The notes below the pieces were generated by a model. It was given only the letters and a program-made list of their open reading frames with translations, made no database searches and was not told the DNA's origin. From positions 558,001 through 622,000 of the forward strand of contig BQFW01000002.1 in assembly GCA_020891255.1 (NCBI GenBank): DNA of 64,000 nt, given 5' to 3'. A program made the position numbers and the translations under genes. The stretch is from Entomortierella parvispora E1425. Lineage: Eukaryota; Fungi; Mortierellomycota. Below are positions 38,049 to 49,000 of this stretch, piece by piece (position 1 is the stretch's first letter; every line of letters starts with the position of its first letter).

Positions 38049-41000
38049 ATGTCGTCCAGAATTCGCCGTGGACCTGGTTCACCCCAACAATCATCTTCAA
38101 GGGGTACGCTCTCGCGCCAATCTTCTAAATCTGTTGTTGATTCGGAGGTTGCTCCATCCTCTCCTTCGAGATCCCGAAGAAGCAACAACAGAGGCAGGGA
38201 CTCGTCTGTGAAGGAGGAAGCTCCAGAAAAAGACTTTGGAGACGATGAAGAGGAGACTGATTCTTCTCCAGCTTCAAGATCCTCGCGATCGAGGCGCCCT
38301 ACCAGAAACGGATCTACGTTAGCCAAGAATGCCGATCCGGAACCCATGGATGTTGATGAGGATGAAGAGATGGTGGACGTGGAAGTCACTGGAAATGCAG
38401 ATGCAGCTGAGGAGGTAGACAGTGATTTGGAGGAAATCGAGGGCGAGATCGAAGAAGCCGGTGAAGCCAAAATTACCAAGGATGGCGAACTTTTAGGAGG
38501 TATAATTTGAAGGTTTTAAAGGTCTTCTGTGTCAAGGTAGTCTACAGTGGGTCCTAACCATTCTTGGTGATTTGTTGCTCCACTGAATTTTCTAGGCCGA
38601 GAATACAAGTGCAGGAACTTCAAAATGCCAACGAGAGGCAACCGCGTCTACATGATGTCGATGGACCCAGCGCGTGTTCTCGGATTCAGAGACAGTTACC
38701 TATTCTTCTTGAGGAACCCACAAATTGTCCGCGTCAACACTACGATTGAGGAAAGAGTGTGGATGATCGAAAACGGTATGCTAATGGCCAACTTCAAGAA
38801 CAAACTCATTGCAGTGGTCACGGCGCGTTCGATGTTCAAGATTTTCGGACACAGGATCGTAAAGAGGGGCAAGTCTCGTATCGACGACTACTATGAGTCT
38901 CGTGCTGCAGAGGAAACACCTGTTGCCGAATCCGAGGATGACGGTGCTGGAACATCGGAGGATGCCAGTGCATCCATGGACGCTGCCCACTCAGAGGATA
39001 CACCTGCACCAACTTCGACAGGAAAGCGGAAGCATACCTTGGCTCAAGCAGAAGAACCTGCTCGTCAGGTCACGGATCTGAACTGGCTGCATGAGAGCGC
39101 GATGGCTGTCCGAGGTCTCAACTCACAGCTTAGGGATTTGCGGAAAGAGAACCCAAGGTTTTTGGACCCCCACACCAACATTGAGCAGGTTCCTGTGCTT
39201 ACGCAGCCTAGCCGTTGCGAAATCACGGTCGCGCCAGCTCCCACCCCGGTCGACACCAAAAATCTATCGCTTTATCCAGTTGTACAGACGGTTGTGTCGA
39301 TTCCTCGTTCTATCGGACCACACGTGGACTCCAAAGTCAAGGTGGAGATTCGAGGCGCCACTCCTGCGCCACCCACTATTCAGGACCCTAATGTCTGGGC
39401 TGTCATTCCTGATGATATTAAGCAAGCATTGGAAACCGCCGCAGCGTCCAAAGCAAAGATGGAAGAAGACGACGACCAATCAAAGTTCCCATTATCATTG
39501 CTGGATGGCCAATACCAGGCTACATTCCCAGTGTAAGTAGGCATGCACGGGCTGTTTCCCCCCCCCCCCCCTTTTTTTTTCTTTCTTAAAATTCATAGAA
39601 TGTCCGCGTTAACTAGATGTATACGCTTTTTTCTAGCCATCAAGCTCGTTTCCAACAACCTTACCGCGTCGTACTGCCGCAGAGTATGACAGGACATGCG
39701 CAATATCTTCATTATCTTAACTCATTGCAGCCTCGAGAGCCTGGTCCAATTATGGAACAAACGACATTGCCTGGCCATGTATCTGCGGAGGATGCTAGGT
39801 TGCTCCAGCTTCAGATGCAACAACAACAGGAACAACAGCTTCAGCAACAGCTTCAGCAACAGCAGGCCAAAATCCAACAGCAGCAGGCTCTATTGGATCA
39901 GCAAGCAGCGGCCAACAAAAAGGCTGAAACACCTCAAGTATGCACTACATCTGTCATTCGATGATATCTTGAACAGATTGGATTATGTAGAGTGGATCGA
40001 CTCTAACAACTGCTCCTTTTCTAAAATTAGCCTCAAAGTCATGGAATTGTTTGCAATGCGCCTCTGAAGACTGGGCTTGGATACTGTCAACGACTTGTTA
40101 GCACGCAAGGCGAGCACTGTCCTCTTCATCGTGTTCCTTACACGATCGCAGGAGCCCCCAATGGCAAAATGGGAGGCCCTCCTACCTGTGGAACCTGCCA
40201 CCAGCAGTCGGCACCGGAGAGTACAATGGACACTCGAAAGCCCATTCCTTGCGCCCCAACTCATCTTAACAAATGCAAAACGTGCAGTAAGGACTTCCAT
40301 CCTCTGTGCCTACAGCTGGATACGCCAAGACTTGTTGCTGGAATCGCATCCTATCCATGGCAATGCAGCGACTGTAAGCTTTGCGTGGTTTGCTTGGACT
40401 CTGGAGACGAAGCTACGCTGCTGATTTGCGATGCCTGCGATCGAGGATGGCACATGGATTGTTGCGACCCTGCCATCAAAGAAGTTCCTCAAGGTAAGAA
40501 TTGACGGACTCTATGTGAGGATGATATCAATGAAGGAACATTTCTGATTTTGGATCCCGTTTGATCTGGCTACTATTTTAGGTGAATGGCTCTGTACTTT
40601 CTGCGCCATGTGCCACTCTTGCCGCGGGAACGAGATTCCAACGACAAAATATAAGCACGCAGATGCTCCTGCTACTGCCAAAGGAAAGTACCCAACGTTT
40701 GTGTGCACATACTGGTAAGACATCATCTCTTGCTGTTGTAGGTGGAGTACTGTGGTTTTTTTCGATGCCCCGTTATATTTACTGATTCTGTCCTTTTTAC
40801 TCTCTGATCACTCTACGAACAGTGTTGTTTGTAGCGACAATTTTGCAAAGGGTCGATTCTGCCCTGTGTGCTTGAAGACTTACCGGAGCGACAGTGGCGA
40901 GGATGGCAGTCAATCGGATGCAGTGGGCGATGATGACAACAATATGGTCTGCTGTGACGAGTGTAACCGTTGGGTGCATATGGATTGCGACGGCCAATTG

Positions 41001-41423
41001 ACAGAAGAGAAGGTGGAGGAGATGGGCGAGGATGAAAGCGTAAAGTACACATGCCCACTCTGTGCAGGAAAGGTGGCGCCTATTAAGGCCGGTCCCGCCA
41101 ACGTCTCAAGTGCAGCCCCGGAGGTTGTTCAGCAGAGCCTGACGGCACAGGCGCCTCCTCAGGGTAAAGCATGCGGTGTGTTGGGAGGAAAGATGCGTGT
41201 CCGTGGTCTAGTCGAGTTCCAGGGCAAGAAGTTGGGCGTGCCCGAGATCATTGGAGCAGGGGTGGAATATGACCGGAAGTTAGTCTCGGAACTTGCCGCT
41301 CTCAAGATCAAGAGCGCAAAGAGGAAGAGGGGACGCCAAACCAAGAGTCCTGTTCGTCGATCATCGATTGCATCCTCAACCTCTTCATCCCTGTCTTCGC
41401 TGACCGGGTCTGTTGATAGTTAG
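38049..41423 (+). CDS. SWI/SNF-RSC subunit-like protein: Rsc7/Swp82 (CRC) domain plus triple PHD finger, multi-exon
   Basis: GEAKITKDGELLGG|REYKCRNF...YMMSMDPARVLGFRDSYLFFLRN...VVTARSMFKIFGHRIVKRG...DDYYE (CRC domain). Later CKTCSKDFHPLCL...WQCSDCKLCVVC...LLICDACDRGWHMDC..P....P.G|EWLC..C and FAKGRFCPVC...MVCCDECNRWVHMDC...YTCPLC. Confidence 0.85.
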
Positions 41424-42428
41424 TCTTTTGTTTTGGCTCGTTATTCGTCCGCCCAGCGTGGACTGTTTGGCTGTGGTGTGTCTACCTACTTCTTTCTTTG
41501 TTTCTCTCTCTCATCTCTTGTTTGTTTTTATTGTAATACATTCTCTCGATCTTTTCGAGAGGCCCTTATTTTTTTTTTTTTTGTTCAACTCCCTCTGCCT
41601 CCCCCTGAGGATCTCGCGTGCCTCTTTGTTTCCTTTTTACGTATGAGAGCGACCGTCCCTTAGGATCTCTTCGTGGTATTGGTGGATCAGTTGAACTAGG
41701 GCAAGGGATGAATGCATGCGTCGTCCCCCAATCAAGGCTGTTCGGACGGACAGACACAGACAGGGACTGGTGGATCCGAGACAAAAATATGACGAGCAAC
41801 GAGAAAAAGAGCAACCATGGCCGCAAAGTAGTAACCCGAAGGTAGGCGTCGCTTGTTGTTTGCTGTTTGTTATTTTTTGCGGGTTTATTGATTGTTGAAT
41901 GGTGCTCTTGCTTTGGACATTCCCAGATCCGCCAGAGGGATGCACAAGCCTGGCGCGCGCGCGCGCTAAGGATGGGCAGGACAGGACAAAAGGACTGGCT
42001 GAATCGGATGGACAGCATCGAGGCACAGACAGCATTGAGGCACAGACAGGACATGCCCAGCATCATCATCTCACCCCTTTGCTCCGCGTTTTTGTCCCTT
42101 TTTTAAAAATATGAGGGAACAGCAGGACCCATCCATCCGTCCCATGGGGTTTGCTTCTCTCTCTCTTTCTCTTACTTCTTTTTTTCATTATTGTATTGCT
42201 CTCCCTTTGCTTCGACCTTTGGCTCATTCCTCCTGTCCTCTCCTCATTCCTTTCTGGCATTCGACATTCAGACCTTGTCCAGGGAAACTGAATAAAAATA
42301 AACACAGACACGCACAGTCCACCGACAAGGATCTCCTCTTCTTCATCCTCATTCTCAACTCTAAAAAACGAGGATTCCCGCCTTATCTCTCTTCTCCAGG
42401 AACAAAAAGGCATCCGACATAGCGAACG

Positions 42429-44615
42429 ATGGAGTCCATGCACTCACAGCCCTGTCCCCAGAATCCTCCTCAGACCTTCCTGGACAAGAAGCCGCCGCTC
42501 CTGCCGCGTCAATCCACCAGTGATGTCCTTTCCTTTACCCACATTATCGCCAACCGCTTGAGTCCTGGCCAGAACGTCTGGGACTTCTTCTCGCCTGCAC
42601 CAGATCCCGATGCACGATTGTCAGAGAGCAGCAATGGCCAGCTTCTCTCGCCCATATCCCCAACCTTTGCCAACTCAATCACTCCCTCGAGTCCTCAACA
42701 ACACCAACAACACCAACAGCAGATCCAGCATGCCACAAGTGCTCCAGCAACCCGGTCCCCGTCTCCTTCGGCCCAGCTTCCTCCGTTGATGTTGGGCGGA
42801 GTTGCTGGTCGGAGGCAGAGTACGATCCTTGGATGTGAAACGATCCAAGAGAAGAGCATCCTGACAACGGCCACCATGGACCGCTGCATCTCCCAACCAC
42901 TGACAACCGCAGAATATCGACCACCACCACCGCCGCCACCACCACAGCCTTCGTCGCCTCAGCCTGCAGCGACAGCAACAGGGGCAGTAACGGGAGCAGA
43001 GACAGGAATAGGCGTCTTATCTGCCGCGGCTGCTACATCCCAAGCGCTGTCTGTCATACCCGATGCTTCTCCGTTGACTACGCCCAGGCTCAAAAAACGT
43101 CGTTCTTTTGCGCAATCGCTCAAGAGTGGAATGCTCAGCCTCACACAAATGCTCTCACCCACCTCGGCCTCGTTTAATTTAAACAGCAATGGCAGCAGCA
43201 CAGCCGTCTCGTCATGTTTACCGAGTCCGACCAGAATAGCGGGACCACCCCATTACAACATCTTGGTGCTGGGCTCAGATTCGGCGCCGCTGGCGAGCAC
43301 GCTTTACAAGATGTCTAGTCTTTTGCCGGCCGCAAGCAAGATCCGACATTACCAAGAGATCTCCGGGTTCTTTGTTGCGTATTTTCGTTCCAATGGCTCG
43401 TTCTCCTGTTCACCCAAAACATCCACGGAAGTGAGTGAACGTGGGACGGGCTCGGCCAAGAAACGTGGCTCTACGTCTAGCCAGGGATCAGGGAGGACGC
43501 GAGCAACAGAACCGCCGGTGGCAGCGTTGCTGGAGAGAAAACTGAGTGGGTTGTTTGAGGACGAAGTCAAACCCCGCCGAAGGTCTATCCAGGATTCAGA
43601 CAACGAAGATGCCACGCCTGAAGAAGATCAGGACCAGGAGAACAGAAGTCATGAAGAAAGAGGAGACAATGAGTCCTTGAAGTCGTTCAAGATGCAGAGT
43701 CGATCGAGCGAAGAGACCTTGCACCAGCTCAAGACATCATCAATGAACTGCGTTACCGTAGGAGGCAGTACTGCCGCCACGAATAGCAAAGGAAGCAGCC
43801 CTTCTCCTCGCAGCGATGATGGGTCCTTCAGCAGCGCAAGCACTACGGGTGGTGTTCTCGAAAATGAGAAAGAGGAGGTCCTTGTTCTGGAAGAGAACGG
43901 CGAGCTCAAGGATACCAGCGATGGAACGGCCTCTATTGCCGATACAGTCGAAACCATGACCGAGGACGATATCACCAACGCTCCTCCAACTGAGATCTCT
44001 GAAACAGGTTTGGCCGATGGAAAAGACGAAGACGAAGAAGAGAAGGAGGAAACACCAGCCGAGGTGAACCCATCCGCCAACGCAACGCTATCTGTGCACG
44101 CTTTCTCATTGGACACGACCTGGCCTGTGCCTCGGATCTTGGCTCAGACGTTTTGGTTTCCGTTTGCTCATGGCATCATCTACATTGTGGACGCGACTCG
44201 CAAGAACGATCCACGAGGCATTGATCACTTGTTGAACGCACGGCAATTCTTGGCCTCGCTGATTGCGGACCCATTTTTTAAACGCAAGGATATCCCTGTG
44301 GTCGTGTTTGCTAATAAGGCCGGACTGGACCCCGAGACCTGCTATCGAGTGGATGAGATTGCAGAGATCCTGGGATGCGAAGACTGGGATGTCGTCTCGG
44401 CAGGGTCTGACGATGGAGATCAAACACCCACATCTGGTGGGGGAATGATGGCGATGATGATGCGGAAGACCAAGAGCGAAGAAGAGTCGCCAGCATCGAA
44501 GCATCGAACGCGACCTTGGTGTGTAAAGAGCACACGATCCGATGGAGCAGGCGATGGGCTGAGAGAGTCTGTCGAGTGGCTCAAGAGTCGTATGGGCGAA
44601 GTTTGGAGGACATGA
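42429..44615 (+). CDS. Arf/Arl-fold pseudo-GTPase with long disordered N-terminus and interswitch insertion, intronless (728 aa)
   Basis: NILVLGSDSAPLASTLYKM aligns with Arf RILMVGLDAAGKTTILYKL. Also HGIIYIVDAT, DIPVVVFANK, EIAEILG, RPWCVKST..G.GDGLRESVEWL, all Arf-like in order. Confidence 0.75.
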   Translation: MESMHSQPCPQNPPQTFLDKKPPLLPRQSTSDVLSFTHIIANRLSPGQNVWDFFSPAPDPDARLSESSNGQLLSPISPTFANSITPSSPQQHQQHQQQIQHATSAPATRSPSPSAQLPPLMLGGVAGRRQSTILGCETIQEKSILTTATMDRCISQPLTTAEYRPPPPPPPPQPSSPQPAATATGAVTGAETGIGVLSAAAATSQALSVIPDASPLTTPRLKKRRSFAQSLKSGMLSLTQMLSPTSASFNLNSNGSSTAVSSCLPSPTRIAGPPHYNILVLGSDSAPLASTLYKMSSLLPAASKIRHYQEISGFFVAYFRSNGSFSCSPKTSTEVSERGTGSAKKRGSTSSQGSGRTRATEPPVAALLERKLSGLFEDEVKPRRRSIQDSDNEDATPEEDQDQENRSHEERGDNESLKSFKMQSRSSEETLHQLKTSSMNCVTVGGSTAATNSKGSSPSPRSDDGSFSSASTTGGVLENEKEEVLVLEENGELKDTSDGTASIADTVETMTEDDITNAPPTEISETGLADGKDEDEEEKEETPAEVNPSANATLSVHAFSLDTTWPVPRILAQTFWFPFAHGIIYIVDATRKNDPRGIDHLLNARQFLASLIADPFFKRKDIPVVVFANKAGLDPETCYRVDEIAEILGCEDWDVVSAGSDDGDQTPTSGGGMMAMMMRKTKSEEESPASKHRTRPWCVKSTRSDGAGDGLRESVEWLKSRMGEVWRT

Positions 44616-45034
44616 GAAGGATCCTTTGGGCAGAAACTGTTTATCTATTCCCTATGCATGCCACATGCTACTTGTAATTAAAAAAAAGACCTTGCTCAAG
44701 GACCCATCACTCGAAAATACAAAACACGCGCTGTACTCTTGAACAGTTGGATGAAGAAGCCCGCCTGGAAAGAGCCAGTTGGATTATCGACCACCTTTCT
44801 GTTTTTTTTATCGAACCCATCATACTCCATCATCATCATCGGCTGCTGCTACGGCATGGCCGAGGATCCCGCTTCTTGTTTATCTCTTCTTTTCTTCATA
44901 CTGCACTCGCTTCCTTTCACCCCTCCTCACCATTTTCAACAGTGCCGTTCCTAAAACACTTTACCAAAACCAAAGCTCCCGACCCATACCCTATCATCCC
45001 TCATCGCCTCTTGCCCGCCACTCGCAGACTCAGC

Positions 45035-45724
45035 ATGTCCGCCGCATCCTCCAGCCGTCAGGCCACCCAAGAAATTGCCGAGGACATGGGCAACAAGATG
45101 ACCGAGAACACTCGACAGGTCGTCAACACGGTCCGACAGCTCTCGATCGTTCAAAAGTACATCACCCCCGCCTTTCAATACGTTCAGCAAAAGTACCGCC
45201 AATGCCCGGCCGTTCTCCGCTTCTCCCTCTTGACCTTTGCCGCCTTGAGCGCGGTCCCAGTCGCGTGCTTCACGGGCTTTATGGCGATGGTCACGATCGG
45301 TTGCTTGATCGTTGCCGGAATCGCCTTCACTATCGTCGAGGTAAGGGAATGCTGTCGCCTTTTTTTTAAAGTTATCCTCCCATTTCACATGAGGGGTTGT
45401 TTGATCATCATTTCCCTCTGATCTTTTTTTTTTTTTTTTTTGTTGACCTTGGTTCATCACCACAGGAATCCTAACCGCTTTGATGTTGTCGTCAAATCCA
45501 AACAATAGGGAGGCTTTGCCGCGTTCGCATCATTGTTCCTGTTGCCGGCCATGGGCGTGGTCCTTTTGTTGACTTGCGGATTGGGAGCAGTGGGACTGAT
45601 CGCGTACGCCTGCTACAGGACTCTTCTCTACGTCCTTGCCATTTTCAACCCCCCGGCCGCTCGAGAAACTCAGCGCAAGGTCGATCAGGGAGTTGAACGT
45701 GCCCAGCAGCGAGCAGCTCATTAA
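45035..45724 (+). CDS. Promethin/LDAF1-like lipid-droplet membrane protein (2 exons)
   Basis: Long hydrophobic hairpins FSLLTFAALSAVPVACFTGFMAMVTIGCLIVAGIAFTIVE|GGFAAFASLFLLPAMGVVLLLTCGLGAVGLIAY. Intron from GTAAGG at 45341 to caatag near 45508. Confidence 0.72.
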
Positions 45725-46033: not shown

Positions 46034-49000
46034 TCAGAGTCCAGCCAAAGCACGGAGATGAGCCGTGTTCTTGGCGCCGGTTTCGGCGACCATGTGGGAA
46101 AAGACGGAATCAGGGTTGCTGAGCAAATTGCGAGGGGTATCGTACTCGGCGACCTGTCCTTGGTGCATGACCAGGATGCGATCGTAATCGATGATGGTGT
46201 TGATTCTGTGAGCGACTGTCACTACCGTCGATTGAGCAAAGTCAATGCGAATGGCCTTTTGGATCAACGCGTCAGTTGCCATGTCAACACTAGCCGTGGC
46301 TATAGAAAACAGAATAAAGTAGTTGAAGGGGGTTACAATGCAAGTCCACCGACAATGAAACCAGCTTTTTTTATCGGTTGAAAAAATTGCGCCTTCCATA
46401 CCTTCATCCAGAACGACAATCTTGGATTTAGCGAGCAAGGCACGGGACAGACAAATGAGTTGACGCTGACCTGCACTCAAGTTCTCACCGAGGGCCGAAA
46501 CCATGGCGTCCAAACCGCCTTCCTGTGCTTGAACATAGGTTTTCAGATCCGACGTTTCCAAAACCTGCCAGAGCTCTTGCTCAGTGTGGCGAGACAATGG
46601 GTCGAGATTGTAGCGAATCGTGCCCTGGAACAAGACAGGATCTTGAGGAATGATACCAATTTTGGGTCTCAAGTCTGCAGTTCCTAGAGTCGTGGTATCA
46701 ATTCCATCCAGCAAGATCTGTCCTCCATCAAGTTCACTCAGCAAGAACAGTGCCTGGATCAAAGATGATTTACCGGCACCTGTGCGGCCCACCACGCCAA
46801 CTGAAAGAAGAAGAAAAAAAGAAAGAAAAATGTCAATGTCAATGTCAGCAAGTACAAGACAACCATGACTGTAATAGAACCGTTCTTACCTTTGTGGCCT
46901 GGTGCAATTTCAAACGAGATATCACGCAAAACTCTTGGAAGTTCGGGACGGTATCGCATTGACACATTCTTGAAGGAAATCGCTCCCTTGCTGGGCCACG
47001 ACGGATCTGGCTTGTTGTCGGGCCTCTCTGCATCGCGCTCCAAGTCCAGATTCTCCACATAGTGAACCAAACGCTCAGCAGAGTTCATATTGTTCTCCAG
47101 AGTGGATAACCGTTGCACACCCCAGTTCAGATCACCAGAGATTCTAGCCAGATAACTCAGAACCAAGCCGGCCGAACTAGGGTTGATCTTGAAACGAGTA
47201 GCAGTTACCATCACTACCGTTGAGAAGGTCAACAAGGCTCCCAGAACGTTCACACGCATAGAGACCCAACGTGCCCCCAACTGGAAGAGATAGTAAGGAC
47301 GGTTGTTGAGATCGATTCGGTATTCGTTCTTGAGGATAGCCTTGTCAACCACATTGTAGGCCTTGAGGGTACCAAGACCTGTCAGGGATTCGGAAAAGTA
47401 GGCGTAGAGATAGGATCGCATGTTGGAATCAAGACGCTTGACTTCACGGGAGGTGGTTCGGTAGTAGATGGAGAGCGCGTAGTAGAGTCCGAGAAGAGGG
47501 ACGATGGCAATCATGAGGAGAGGGAAAGTCACAATGACCAGTGCGATGGTACCGAGAATAGTCACGAGCGTGATAGTTAACTCATACAGAGTGCTCCACA
47601 GGATATTGTCAAGGGTGTCCACATCACGACTGAATCTATATTCGGAAATATCAAGAGAAATAACATACAAAGGTGCTCTGTTAGTTACCCGATAGTCATG
47701 GCAATGCGACAGAAAGCGGATGCCATGGCGCCGATTACTCACCTGTTGATGATTCGGCCCAAGGGCGTTGTATCAAAGAAGGACAGAGGAGAGCGCAAAA
47801 CACGCTTGAACGCTTTGTCATGCATACTGTTTGCAGTCTTAACAATTGTGTAGGACAAAGACAAAGCTGCGCCGAAAACGAGAACCATCTGAGTCAGGGC
47901 CCATCCTACGTAGATACCAATGTACTGGCGAGTTGACAATGGGAACTGCTCGTTAGACCACCAGGTCATCCATTGATTGCCCCTGTCAAATAATTGAAAG
48001 TAAGGTGTTAGTTGTTGAAGGAAGAGGGGGCTCTAGAATTTTATCCGCCCTTCATCAGAGTATCATCAACTTACAAGACGTTGGCAACTTGTTGCGCGAT
48101 GAAGAGACCAAATGTGAGTGCCCACAGATGCCATCCAGAGGCTTTAAGGTACCCTCCATAGACGTTCTTTTTCACGGCTCCAGACTCTCGCTCTTCATCC
48201 GTCATGAGTTTCTGAGGCTTGGTCTCTGCCATCTCCACGGATCTACGATGGTCACCTTCAACTTCATCCTTGAACCGACTGTCCTTCTTCTCATCCATTC
48301 CATCTTCACTCAATTCAGCCTTTCCAATCGCCTTGGTTTCTGGCTGAATATCATCAAACGTAATATCCAGCTCCTCCTTGTCGCCTTTAGATTGGACACC
48401 TCCGTATTGAGCCATGAGAGCGCAAAAATCGCCATCTTTGGCAATCAAATCCTTGTAGGTGCCCTCCTCTGCAATCTTGCCGTCCTTCATGCAGAGCACA
48501 TAGTCTACATCTGGCAGAACGTGCAATTGATGGGTCGCAATCACACGTGTCCGTCCAGCCAACTCCTTCATCAAGCAATCCTCCCAAAGACTCTTGCCCA
48601 CATGGGCATCCACGGCCGACAATGGATCGTCCATGATCACCAATCCAGATCGGAAGTAGACGCTGCGAGCCAAAGACAAACGGGCCTTCTGTCCACCAGA
48701 CAAGTTCACACCTCTCTCTCCAATTTCGGTTTGGTCTCCAAAGGGGAACAACTTGAGATCCTGCTCCAACGAACAAGCCCTGATCACGCCCCAGTACCGT
48801 TCCTCGTCAAAGGGAGTATCAAACAGAATGTTGTCTCGAATCGTGGCGTTCTGGATCCATGCTGTCTGAGCCGCGTAACTGATGTTGGTTCCCCGGGTGA
48901 CTTTGCCTTGAGAGATGGTCATGTTGCCAATCATGGCTTGCAACAGAGATGATTTGCCACTGCCCACGGGTCCTACTACTGCGACAAGGGATCCTCGCGC

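Follow-up and report, generated by a model that had tools for sequence, protein, structure and literature searches.

A likely Arf-derived pseudoGTPase family of Mortierellaceae with a disordered interswitch insertion

The open reading frame and its predicted fold

The DNA analysed here is a stretch of 64,000 nucleotides from the genome of Entomortierella parvispora E1425 (contig BQFW01000002.1, positions 558,001 to 622,000, forward strand), hereafter called the window. On its plus strand lies a complete, intronless open reading frame (ORF) for a protein of 728 aa, which has the predicted fold of an Arf-type small GTPase and replaced nucleotide motifs, and is referred to here as the pseudo-Arf protein. 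An earlier note, made from the sequence of the same stretch, had described this ORF as open across its full 2.2 kb. Direct translation yielded 728 codons and showed the coordinates of that note to be exact, including the start of the string GSDSAPLAST at nt 43272; by the same translation, YQEISGFFVAYFR corresponds to aa 308-320. Over its first ~720 aa, the annotated protein EMPS_01056 (913 aa) matches the window ORF with 100% identity. Orthologous ORFs from Linnemannia elongata (L001), E. chlamydospora (L003) and Gryganskiella (L004) likewise lack introns and share the terminus ...SRMGE(V/I)W, and all five ORFs compared, that is, the window ORF, these three and the in-genome paralog L002, are without introns and finish two to five residues after ...SRMGE(V/I)W. 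The ORF and the parts of its G domain are as follows.

42429..44615, plus strand: pseudo-Arf protein ORF of paralog group A, complete, intronless, 728 aa and stop
43239..43394, plus strand: first half of the G domain (β1, pseudo-P-loop, α1, switch-I equivalent, β2; aa 271-322), predicted local distance difference test score (pLDDT) 76-83
43272..43301, plus strand: pseudo-G1 GSDSAPLAST (aa 282-291) in place of GLDAAGKTT; HMMER aligns aa 274-295 with Arf1 16-37
44073..44387, plus strand: second part of the G domain (β3, switch-II equivalent/α2, β4, α3, β5, pseudo-G4, α4; aa 549-653), pLDDT 76-92
44109..44126, plus strand: pseudo-G3 LDTTWP (aa 561-566) in place of WDVGGQ, register inferred
44313..44324, plus strand: pseudo-G4 NKAG (aa 629-632) in place of NKQD, aligned to Arf FANKQD
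44505..44612, plus strand: β6, pseudo-G5 and C-terminal helix α5 (aa 693-728); HMMER aligns aa 689-723 with Arf 145-178
44526-44546, plus strand: pseudo-G5 KSTRSDG (aa 700-706) in place of (T)CAT, HMMER register

The sequence link between the window protein and Arf is weak when the protein is taken alone. Its match to the Pfam family Arf (PF00025) has a score of 19.6 bits (E 6.9e-4) and stays below the gathering cut-off of 22.3, and a phmmer search of PDB chains gave E 1e-3 with three collinear pieces, in which aa 274-295, 574-650 and 689-723 correspond to Arf residues 16-37, 79-145 and 145-178. At the level of the family, however, the link is solid, because 23 of the 25 aligned members match PF00025 at E <=0.01 (best E 3.9e-7) and the family profile matches PDB chains, with Candida Arf1/Arf2 (E 1.2e-4) at the head, followed by Arl6, other Arf1s, Arf6, Arl8 and Arl3.

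AlphaFold2 models were built with 25 and later with 82 family sequences. In the 82-sequence run, the core of the G domain (aa 271-322 and 549-728) had pLDDT values of 76-92, and the complete element order of a small GTPase was predicted, β1-α1-β2-(insert)-β3-α2-β4-α3-β5-α4-β6-α5. The elements predicted by AlphaFold2 are:

β1, aa 275-282
α1, aa 285-298
β2, aa 314-320
disordered insertion, aa 321-552
β3, aa 553-560
α2, aa 566-579
β4, aa 582-588
α3, aa 595-613
β5, aa 624-629
α4, aa 641-655
variable loop, aa 656-692
β6, aa 697-701
α5, aa 709-726

In a search of 48,161 PDB representatives that was independent of Foldseek, Arf1 was the top match (Z 17.1, 162 aa, 26% identity), and Arf6 was found at Z 16.5 with 31% identity; the top 50 matches of Foldseek were Arf, Arl or Sar proteins throughout. 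When the 82-sequence model was compared by VIA-align, the top 50 rows were all Arf/Arl, with Z 17.3-19.3 and, in the top ten, a root-mean-square deviation (rmsd) of 2.2-2.6 Å; the ARL6 match had Z 19.3 and rmsd 2.2 Å over 151 aa, and the Arf1 matches had Z 18.3-19.1 over 160-166 aa. Identity in the structural alignments was 26-31% to Arf1, Arf3, Arf6 and Candida Arf1/2, and 16-24% to Arl2, Arl3, Arl5, Arl6, Arl8 and Arl13. Feature and shape searches of the ESM Atlas returned only ordinary Arf/Arl/MglA/Gα clusters. The model fitted the GDP form slightly better than the GTP form, both for ARL6ΔN (Z 19.3, 2.2 Å against Z 17.8, 3.0 Å) and for Arf1 (Z 18.3, 2.5 Å against Z 17.6, 3.1 Å); this gap of about 1 Z unit, near the tie limit of the tool and taken from a predicted model, is a hint only. 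The earlier statement that the Arf scaffold is recognisable is thus upheld by the family-level profile matches and by the predicted fold, and in the proposed check on a model the small-GTPase fold was adopted, with the Arf family ranking first. The family derives from an Arf-type small GTPase, and the PDB profile scores and structural identities hint at Arf1/Arf6 as the closest relatives.

Replacement of the nucleotide motifs and constraint on the fold

The occupants of the nucleotide-binding positions were counted in an alignment of 82 family sequences, with the sequences that occupy a column as denominator. The register of G1, G4 and G5 was taken from HMMER alignments; that of switch I and G3 was obtained by ungapped extension of these alignments and from the predicted strands, and is hence inferred. 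The counts by Arf1 position are:

Gly29, replaced by Pro (Pro287): 78/78
Lys30, replaced by Leu (Leu288): 76/78, with Ile in the other 2
Thr31, replaced by Ala (Ala289): 78/78
Thr48, replaced by Ile (Ile311): 78/80
Asp67, kept (Asp562): 81/81
Gly70, replaced by Trp (Trp565): 81/81
Gln71, replaced by Pro (Pro566): 81/81
Asn126 and Lys127, kept (Asn629, Lys630): 82/82 each
Asp129, replaced by Gly: 82/82
Cys159, replaced by Arg (Arg703): 80/81

The earlier note had read G1 as lacking GK[T/S], switch I as lacking its Thr, G4 as NKAG and G5 as STRS, and each of these readings recurs across the family: the Pro, Leu and Ala substitutes of G1 are fixed, Ile stands at the Thr48 position in the inferred register, and the Gly of G4 and Arg703 of G5 are invariant or nearly so. 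For G3, the loss of the motif stood, but the string FSLDTTW is shifted by two residues; LDTTWP fits better, and Asp562 is kept. The P-loop Lys/Thr, the G3 Gly/Gln and the NKxD Asp were found in 0 of the 82 family sequences. Orthologs with an intact GKT/DxxG, which would have marked a local decay product, were likewise absent among the 82, and the PLA of the pseudo-P-loop is itself fixed. Because the replacements are fixed in nearly every one of the 82 sequences, local decay does not account for the loss of the motifs. The residues for phosphate, Mg2+, guanine and catalysis have been exchanged family-wide in an intact Arf fold.

It is quite unlikely that the domain has remained an atypical but working switch (a pseudoGTPase of class ii/iii or an unusual GTPase) with non-canonical binding of GTP, GDP or ATP. 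The invariant G3 Asp562 and Asn-Lys of NKxD would agree with such binding, Ser290/Thr291 after the pseudo-P-loop could in principle contact phosphate, and weak nucleotide binding, or purification in the apo form, has been described for several atypical ARLs (PMC12722892). However, several essential residues have been lost together: Leu stands for the P-loop Lys, Ala for the Mg2+ Thr31, Ile for the switch-I Thr, Trp for the G3 Gly and Gly for the guanine-specifying Asp, with G5 altered as well. These losses are fixed in 76-82 of the 82 sequences, and no small GTPase is known to bind nucleotide when all such residues are missing.

Selection was assessed from codon alignments of the window ORF with those of Gryganskiella, E. 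chlamydospora, Linnemannia elongata and the in-genome paralog. In the G core (195 codons), which is ~90% identical between genera, dN (nonsynonymous substitutions per nonsynonymous site) was 0.04-0.07 between genera and 0.11 between the paralogs, and dS (its synonymous counterpart) was saturated (1.1 to >2) or not computable; their ratio, ω, was ~0.03-0.06 where computable. The first half of the G domain (aa 271-322) gave dN 0.04-0.08 between genera and paralogs, and family alignments place the invariant columns of the family in aa 549-653. The insertion described below had dN 0.5-1.1, and the N-terminus and insertion together 0.4-1.1. These values agree with the selection on the scaffold that the earlier note had argued for, and the fold and surface of the G domain are under strong purifying constraint. 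The possibility that the ORF is a chance frame or a decaying former Arf gene, that is, a pseudogene or relic, is refuted: the loss of all G motifs and the sub-threshold Pfam score of the window protein would suit a relic, but an unbroken ORF occurs in both paralog groups and in over 40 genomes from at least 13 genera, the core has the low ω given above, and the residues that replaced the motifs are themselves invariant.

The most conserved surface of the protein is the switch/interswitch face. A decoy that titrates Arf regulators, such as Sec7 guanine nucleotide exchange factors (GEFs) and Arf GTPase-activating proteins (ArfGAPs), or Arf effectors, would draw on such a face, and the 26-31% identity to true Arfs points the same way, as does the Arf hydrophobic triad Phe51, Trp66 and Tyr81, which in the inferred register stays hydrophobic as Phe314, Leu561 and Trp576. 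Nevertheless, a decoy is quite improbable as a separate explanation: most residues of Arf1 switch I/II that touch GEFs, GAPs and effectors are changed, the protein has no N-terminal myristoylated helix for recruitment to the membranes of GEFs and GAPs, and a decoy would be a special case of the pseudoGTPase interpretation given below rather than distinct from it.

Disordered regions, family distribution and neighbouring genes

Outside the fold, the following features were located.

42468..42599, plus strand: N-terminal motif 1 (aa 14-57, PQTFLDKKPPLLPRQSTSDVLSFTHIIANRLSPGQNVWDFFSPA), short predicted helices, at least 80% conservation in both paralog groups
42807..42821, plus strand: basophilic kinase-type site GRRQS (aa 127-131), [RK][RK]x[ST] in 59/66 occupying sequences
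43080..43160, plus strand: motif 2 (aa 218-244, TPRLKKRRSFAQSLKSGMLSLTQMLSP), basic cluster, KRRS site and short helix, in 70/70 occupying sequences
43389..44084, plus strand: acidic S/E/T-rich insertion of 232 aa (aa 321-552) at the tip of the β2-β3 interswitch hairpin, predicted disordered
43560-43586, plus strand: conserved island DEVKPRRRS of the insertion (family DEVK(S/P)RR.S)
43701-43721, plus strand: conserved island RSSEETL of the insertion (family RSSEE(T/S)L)
44388..44504, plus strand: second variable disordered loop, α4-β6 (aa 654-692), pLDDT ~50

The insertion agrees with the ~230 aa of disordered sequence that had been noticed earlier between β2 and β3. It consists of 16% S, 14% E, 10% T and 7% D, with a net charge of -25, and AlphaFold2 gave it pLDDT values mostly below 50 and predicted no secondary structure. 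Every member of the family carries it, at a length of 86-260 aa (median 151). The loop between α4 and β6, a point absent from the earlier note, spans 10-71 aa across the family; in the window protein it holds a GGGMMAMMM run that is common to Gryganskiella.

The 270 mostly disordered residues that precede β1 contain 15% S and 14% P. They begin with MESMHS and thus offer no Gly2 for myristoylation, and an Arf-type amphipathic helix just before β1 is not present; Cys9 of the window protein is not conserved among orthologs, and no lipidation site is conserved in the family. The composition of both regions was described correctly at first, S/E/D-rich for the insertion and Pro/Ser-rich for the N-terminus, but neither is purely low-complexity, as conserved motifs occur in both. 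The helix of motif 2 was placed at aa 238-242 in both AlphaFold2 models. Its [RK][RK]x[ST] site KRRS (aa 223-226) is found in 70/70 sequences, and the corresponding site RRRS of the insertion (aa 383-386) in 42/70. Pfam searches of motif 1, the insertion and the other regions outside the fold gave no match. Within aa ~90-175 (window 42700-42950), species-specific low-complexity runs, namely QQHQQHQQQIQH and nine consecutive prolines, have no counterpart in the orthologs.

Within motif 1, aa 41-60 had pLDDT values of 80/73 in the 82-sequence run, at a distance of ~220 residues from the fold, and motif 1 may dock on the predicted G domain at the site of the Arf N-terminal helix. Two structural alignments began at residue 49-54, inside this motif. 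A further explanation builds on such docking, namely that the Arf-fold switch has been rewired from GTP to phosphorylation control, with the mechanism of interswitch and N-terminal helix kept in a new form. The motif at aa 14-57 would then dock in the pocket that holds the N-terminal helix in GDP-type Arf, and the conserved [RK][RK]x[ST] sites beside the motifs and within the insertion, once phosphorylated, would free the motif or fix it in place, so that partner binding is switched without nucleotide. We regard this as unlikely, and the hints behind it are weak: the pLDDT of 73-80 at aa 41-60, the slightly better fit to the GDP-type structures and the position of the insertion at the moving hairpin.

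A word search found 79 relatives of the window protein, typically two per genome, and all the named ones belong to Mortierellaceae, a family that lies in the single order of the phylum Mortierellomycota (NCBI taxonomy). They come from Mortierella, Linnemannia, Podila, Entomortierella, Gryganskiella, Dissophora and Gamsiella, and from Lobosporangium, Modicella, Benniella, Actinomortierella, Lunasporangiospora and Haplosporangium. The second family copy of E. parvispora is EMPS_08266 (P0062, 506 aa). Logan contigs with family members have the appearance of genomic DNA. When 1.84 billion cluster representatives were searched exhaustively with the family profile (hmmsearch), 24 proteins were found at E <=1e-3, of which 23 are family members or fragments. 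The remaining protein, P0090 (E 9e-7), was rejected as spurious, being a bacterial repeat protein with ten matches on a short low-complexity G/D/E-rich stretch. Canonical Arfs, other fungal phyla and Microsporidia gave no match to the profile among these representatives. Full-text literature searches on Arf pseudoGTPases, interswitch insertions and Mortierella ADP-ribosylation factor revealed no description of the family. Within the reach of these searches, the earlier view that no fungal family of this kind had been described holds.

In a maximum likelihood (ML) tree of 42 members, a well-supported group B (Shimodaira-Hasegawa-like approximate likelihood ratio test, SH-aLRT, 97) gathers the second copies of many genera, EMPS_08266 among them. 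The remaining members make up group A, where the window protein is placed with Gryganskiella. The group-A loci of Linnemannia and Gryganskiella comprise actin, an Rsc7/CRC_subunit(+PHD) gene, the pseudo-Arf gene and an ABC transporter. At the group-B locus of E. parvispora (L002:4715-9521, BQFW01000011.1), which compares with window positions 38049-44615, a CRC_subunit/Rsc7-type gene lies upstream and actin nearby. The shared neighbours at the two paralog loci point to an old segmental duplication, and the Rsc7-like and pseudo-Arf genes apparently duplicated together as one unit at an early stage of Mortierellaceae. Downstream of the window ORF, positions 46034-46795 on the minus strand encode the C-terminal portion of an ABC transporter (ABC_tran-like), in synteny with the ABC transporter beside the Linnemannia and Gryganskiella orthologs. 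The other neighbour is:

45035-45340 and 45509-45724, plus strand: promethin/LDAF1-like gene of two exons (PF16015, E 1.5e-8)

In GenBank, both EMPS_01056 (P0001) and the Gryganskiella model P0002 fuse the pseudo-Arf ORF to this promethin-like gene across a 385-nt GT..AG gap (~44592-44976). Promethin acts in the assembly of lipid droplets, and Mortierella fungi are oleaginous. If the 913-aa fusion were the true product, the pseudo-Arf protein would bear a membrane hairpin and be located at the endoplasmic reticulum (ER) or lipid droplets. The occurrence of the model in two species, the GT..AG pair at ~44592/44976 and the oleaginous habit would accord with this, but we consider it very unlikely. 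The fusion deletes the RMGE(V/I)W C-terminus that is conserved family-wide, although the stop codon stands in the DNA of both species, and it is therefore probably an annotation artefact. Moreover, the promethin gene has its own ATG (45035) and its own GTAAG..AG intron of 168 nt (45341-45508), as against the joining one of 385 nt. It is also absent from the neighbourhood of the Linnemannia elongata ortholog and from the paralog locus, and a link to lipid droplets through this neighbour was dropped for that reason. Annotation fusions of this kind are common here, as the merge with actin in P0009 indicates, and gene models around the pseudo-Arf locus are unreliable in several assemblies. P0009 itself, from Mortierella sp. 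AD094 (1000 aa), is a family member fused to actin and bears the name 'Actin, aortic smooth muscle'.

Interpretation and comparison with known GTPase-fold proteins

Taken together, we consider it likely that the pseudo-Arf proteins are a Mortierellomycota-restricted, two-paralog, Arf-derived pseudoGTPase of class-i-like type that acts as a nucleotide-independent interaction module. Judged from its sequence, the G domain would no longer bind or hydrolyse GTP, and the bulky hydrophobic or basic residues Pro287, Leu288, Trp565 and Arg703 probably occupy the former nucleotide pocket. The frozen switch/interswitch face might serve as a constitutive surface for binding a partner, which is its candidate role. 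Control would have moved from nucleotide exchange to the disordered flanks, putatively by way of the conserved basophilic sites, which would be phosphorylated, and possibly with docking of the N-terminal motif on the G domain. Several points weigh against this interpretation. The window protein retains the G3 Asp (Asp562), Asn629 and Lys630, and the presumed loss of nucleotide binding is read from sequence. HMMER needs ~50 bits at the scale of 1.84 billion representatives, so that very divergent kin outside Mortierellomycota could be missed. Partner, cellular location and any role of phosphorylation are all conjecture, and it is a pLDDT value that suggests the N-terminal docking.

Compared with the Arf1/Arf6 class (PF00025), the family has the same fold and order of elements (Z 17-19, rmsd 2.2-2.6 Å) and keeps hGIIYIVDA (Arf QGLIFVVDS), VVVFANK, RPW-V/I and GL.E.V/L.WL. 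Unlike Arf, however, it has all five G motifs replaced and neither Gly2 nor a myristoylated helix, and it bears the disordered interswitch insertion of 86-260 aa and an N-terminal extension of 150-280 aa, so that the window protein reaches 728 aa as against ~180. A eukaryote-wide survey of the ARF family left out sequences with disrupted motifs (PMC8358228).

The closest precedent is ArlEM, a putative Arf-family pseudoGTPase specific to Eumicrosporea, which was described in 2026 in BMC Biol and proposed to be of class i (PMC13393502). It is likewise a lineage-restricted member of the Arf family, its parentage is unplaced, and its P-loop and other G boxes are disrupted clade-wide (PMC13393502). 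In contrast, ArlEM is small and very variable, with helices sometimes missing and an N-terminal palmitoylation or myristoylation predicted (PMC13393502), whereas the Mortierella family has ~90% core identity, a predicted complete fold, long disordered regions and no conserved lipidation site. Profile searches detected no sequence link between the two.

The class-i scheme is that of Stiegler and Boggon (2020), as cited in three papers (PMC12722892, PMC12490416, PMC5593906), with the N-terminal domain of AAGAB, pG1/pG2 of p190RhoGAP, CENP-M and RhoBTB as examples. Such proteins use the GTPase fold as a nucleotide-free interaction module, with the motifs lost and the domain under selection; in the Mortierella family, too, a GTPase fold with its motifs lost is maintained by selection. 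The examples given there are of Ras-, Rho- or Rab-like or unassigned origin and lie mostly in multidomain proteins, and none of them is Arf-type with an interswitch insertion. Their nucleotide-free status has been demonstrated, whereas in the Mortierella family it is presumed from sequence. In the α subunits of heterotrimeric G proteins (Gα), too, the G domain of an Arf-like ancestor took up a large insertion (PMC8358228), and Gα chains appeared among the structural matches at Z 13-14; however, their insertion is folded, helical and placed between α1 and β2, and their G motifs are intact, whereas the Mortierella insertion is disordered and lies between β2 and β3.

The general kind, a lineage-specific Arf-family pseudoGTPase, is thus already known from ArlEM. 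What appears new is the family itself and its architecture, in which a complete Arf fold and fixed replacement motifs are combined with a disordered interswitch insertion and a motif-bearing N-terminus. The study of pseudo-GTPases is a young field, and Arf-derived examples are very few. The Mortierella family is an unusually clean one, with its complete fold, its fixed substitutes at every nucleotide motif, a core of extreme conservation throughout the phylum and two old paralogs. It is a good natural case for what the Arf fold can do without GTP, and for the effect of a long disordered region in the very element that drives the conformational switch of Arf. The two genes are phylum-specific and under strong selection, and the fungi that carry them, oleaginous soil dwellers associated with plants, are amenable to genetic manipulation, so that the function is open to experimental test.

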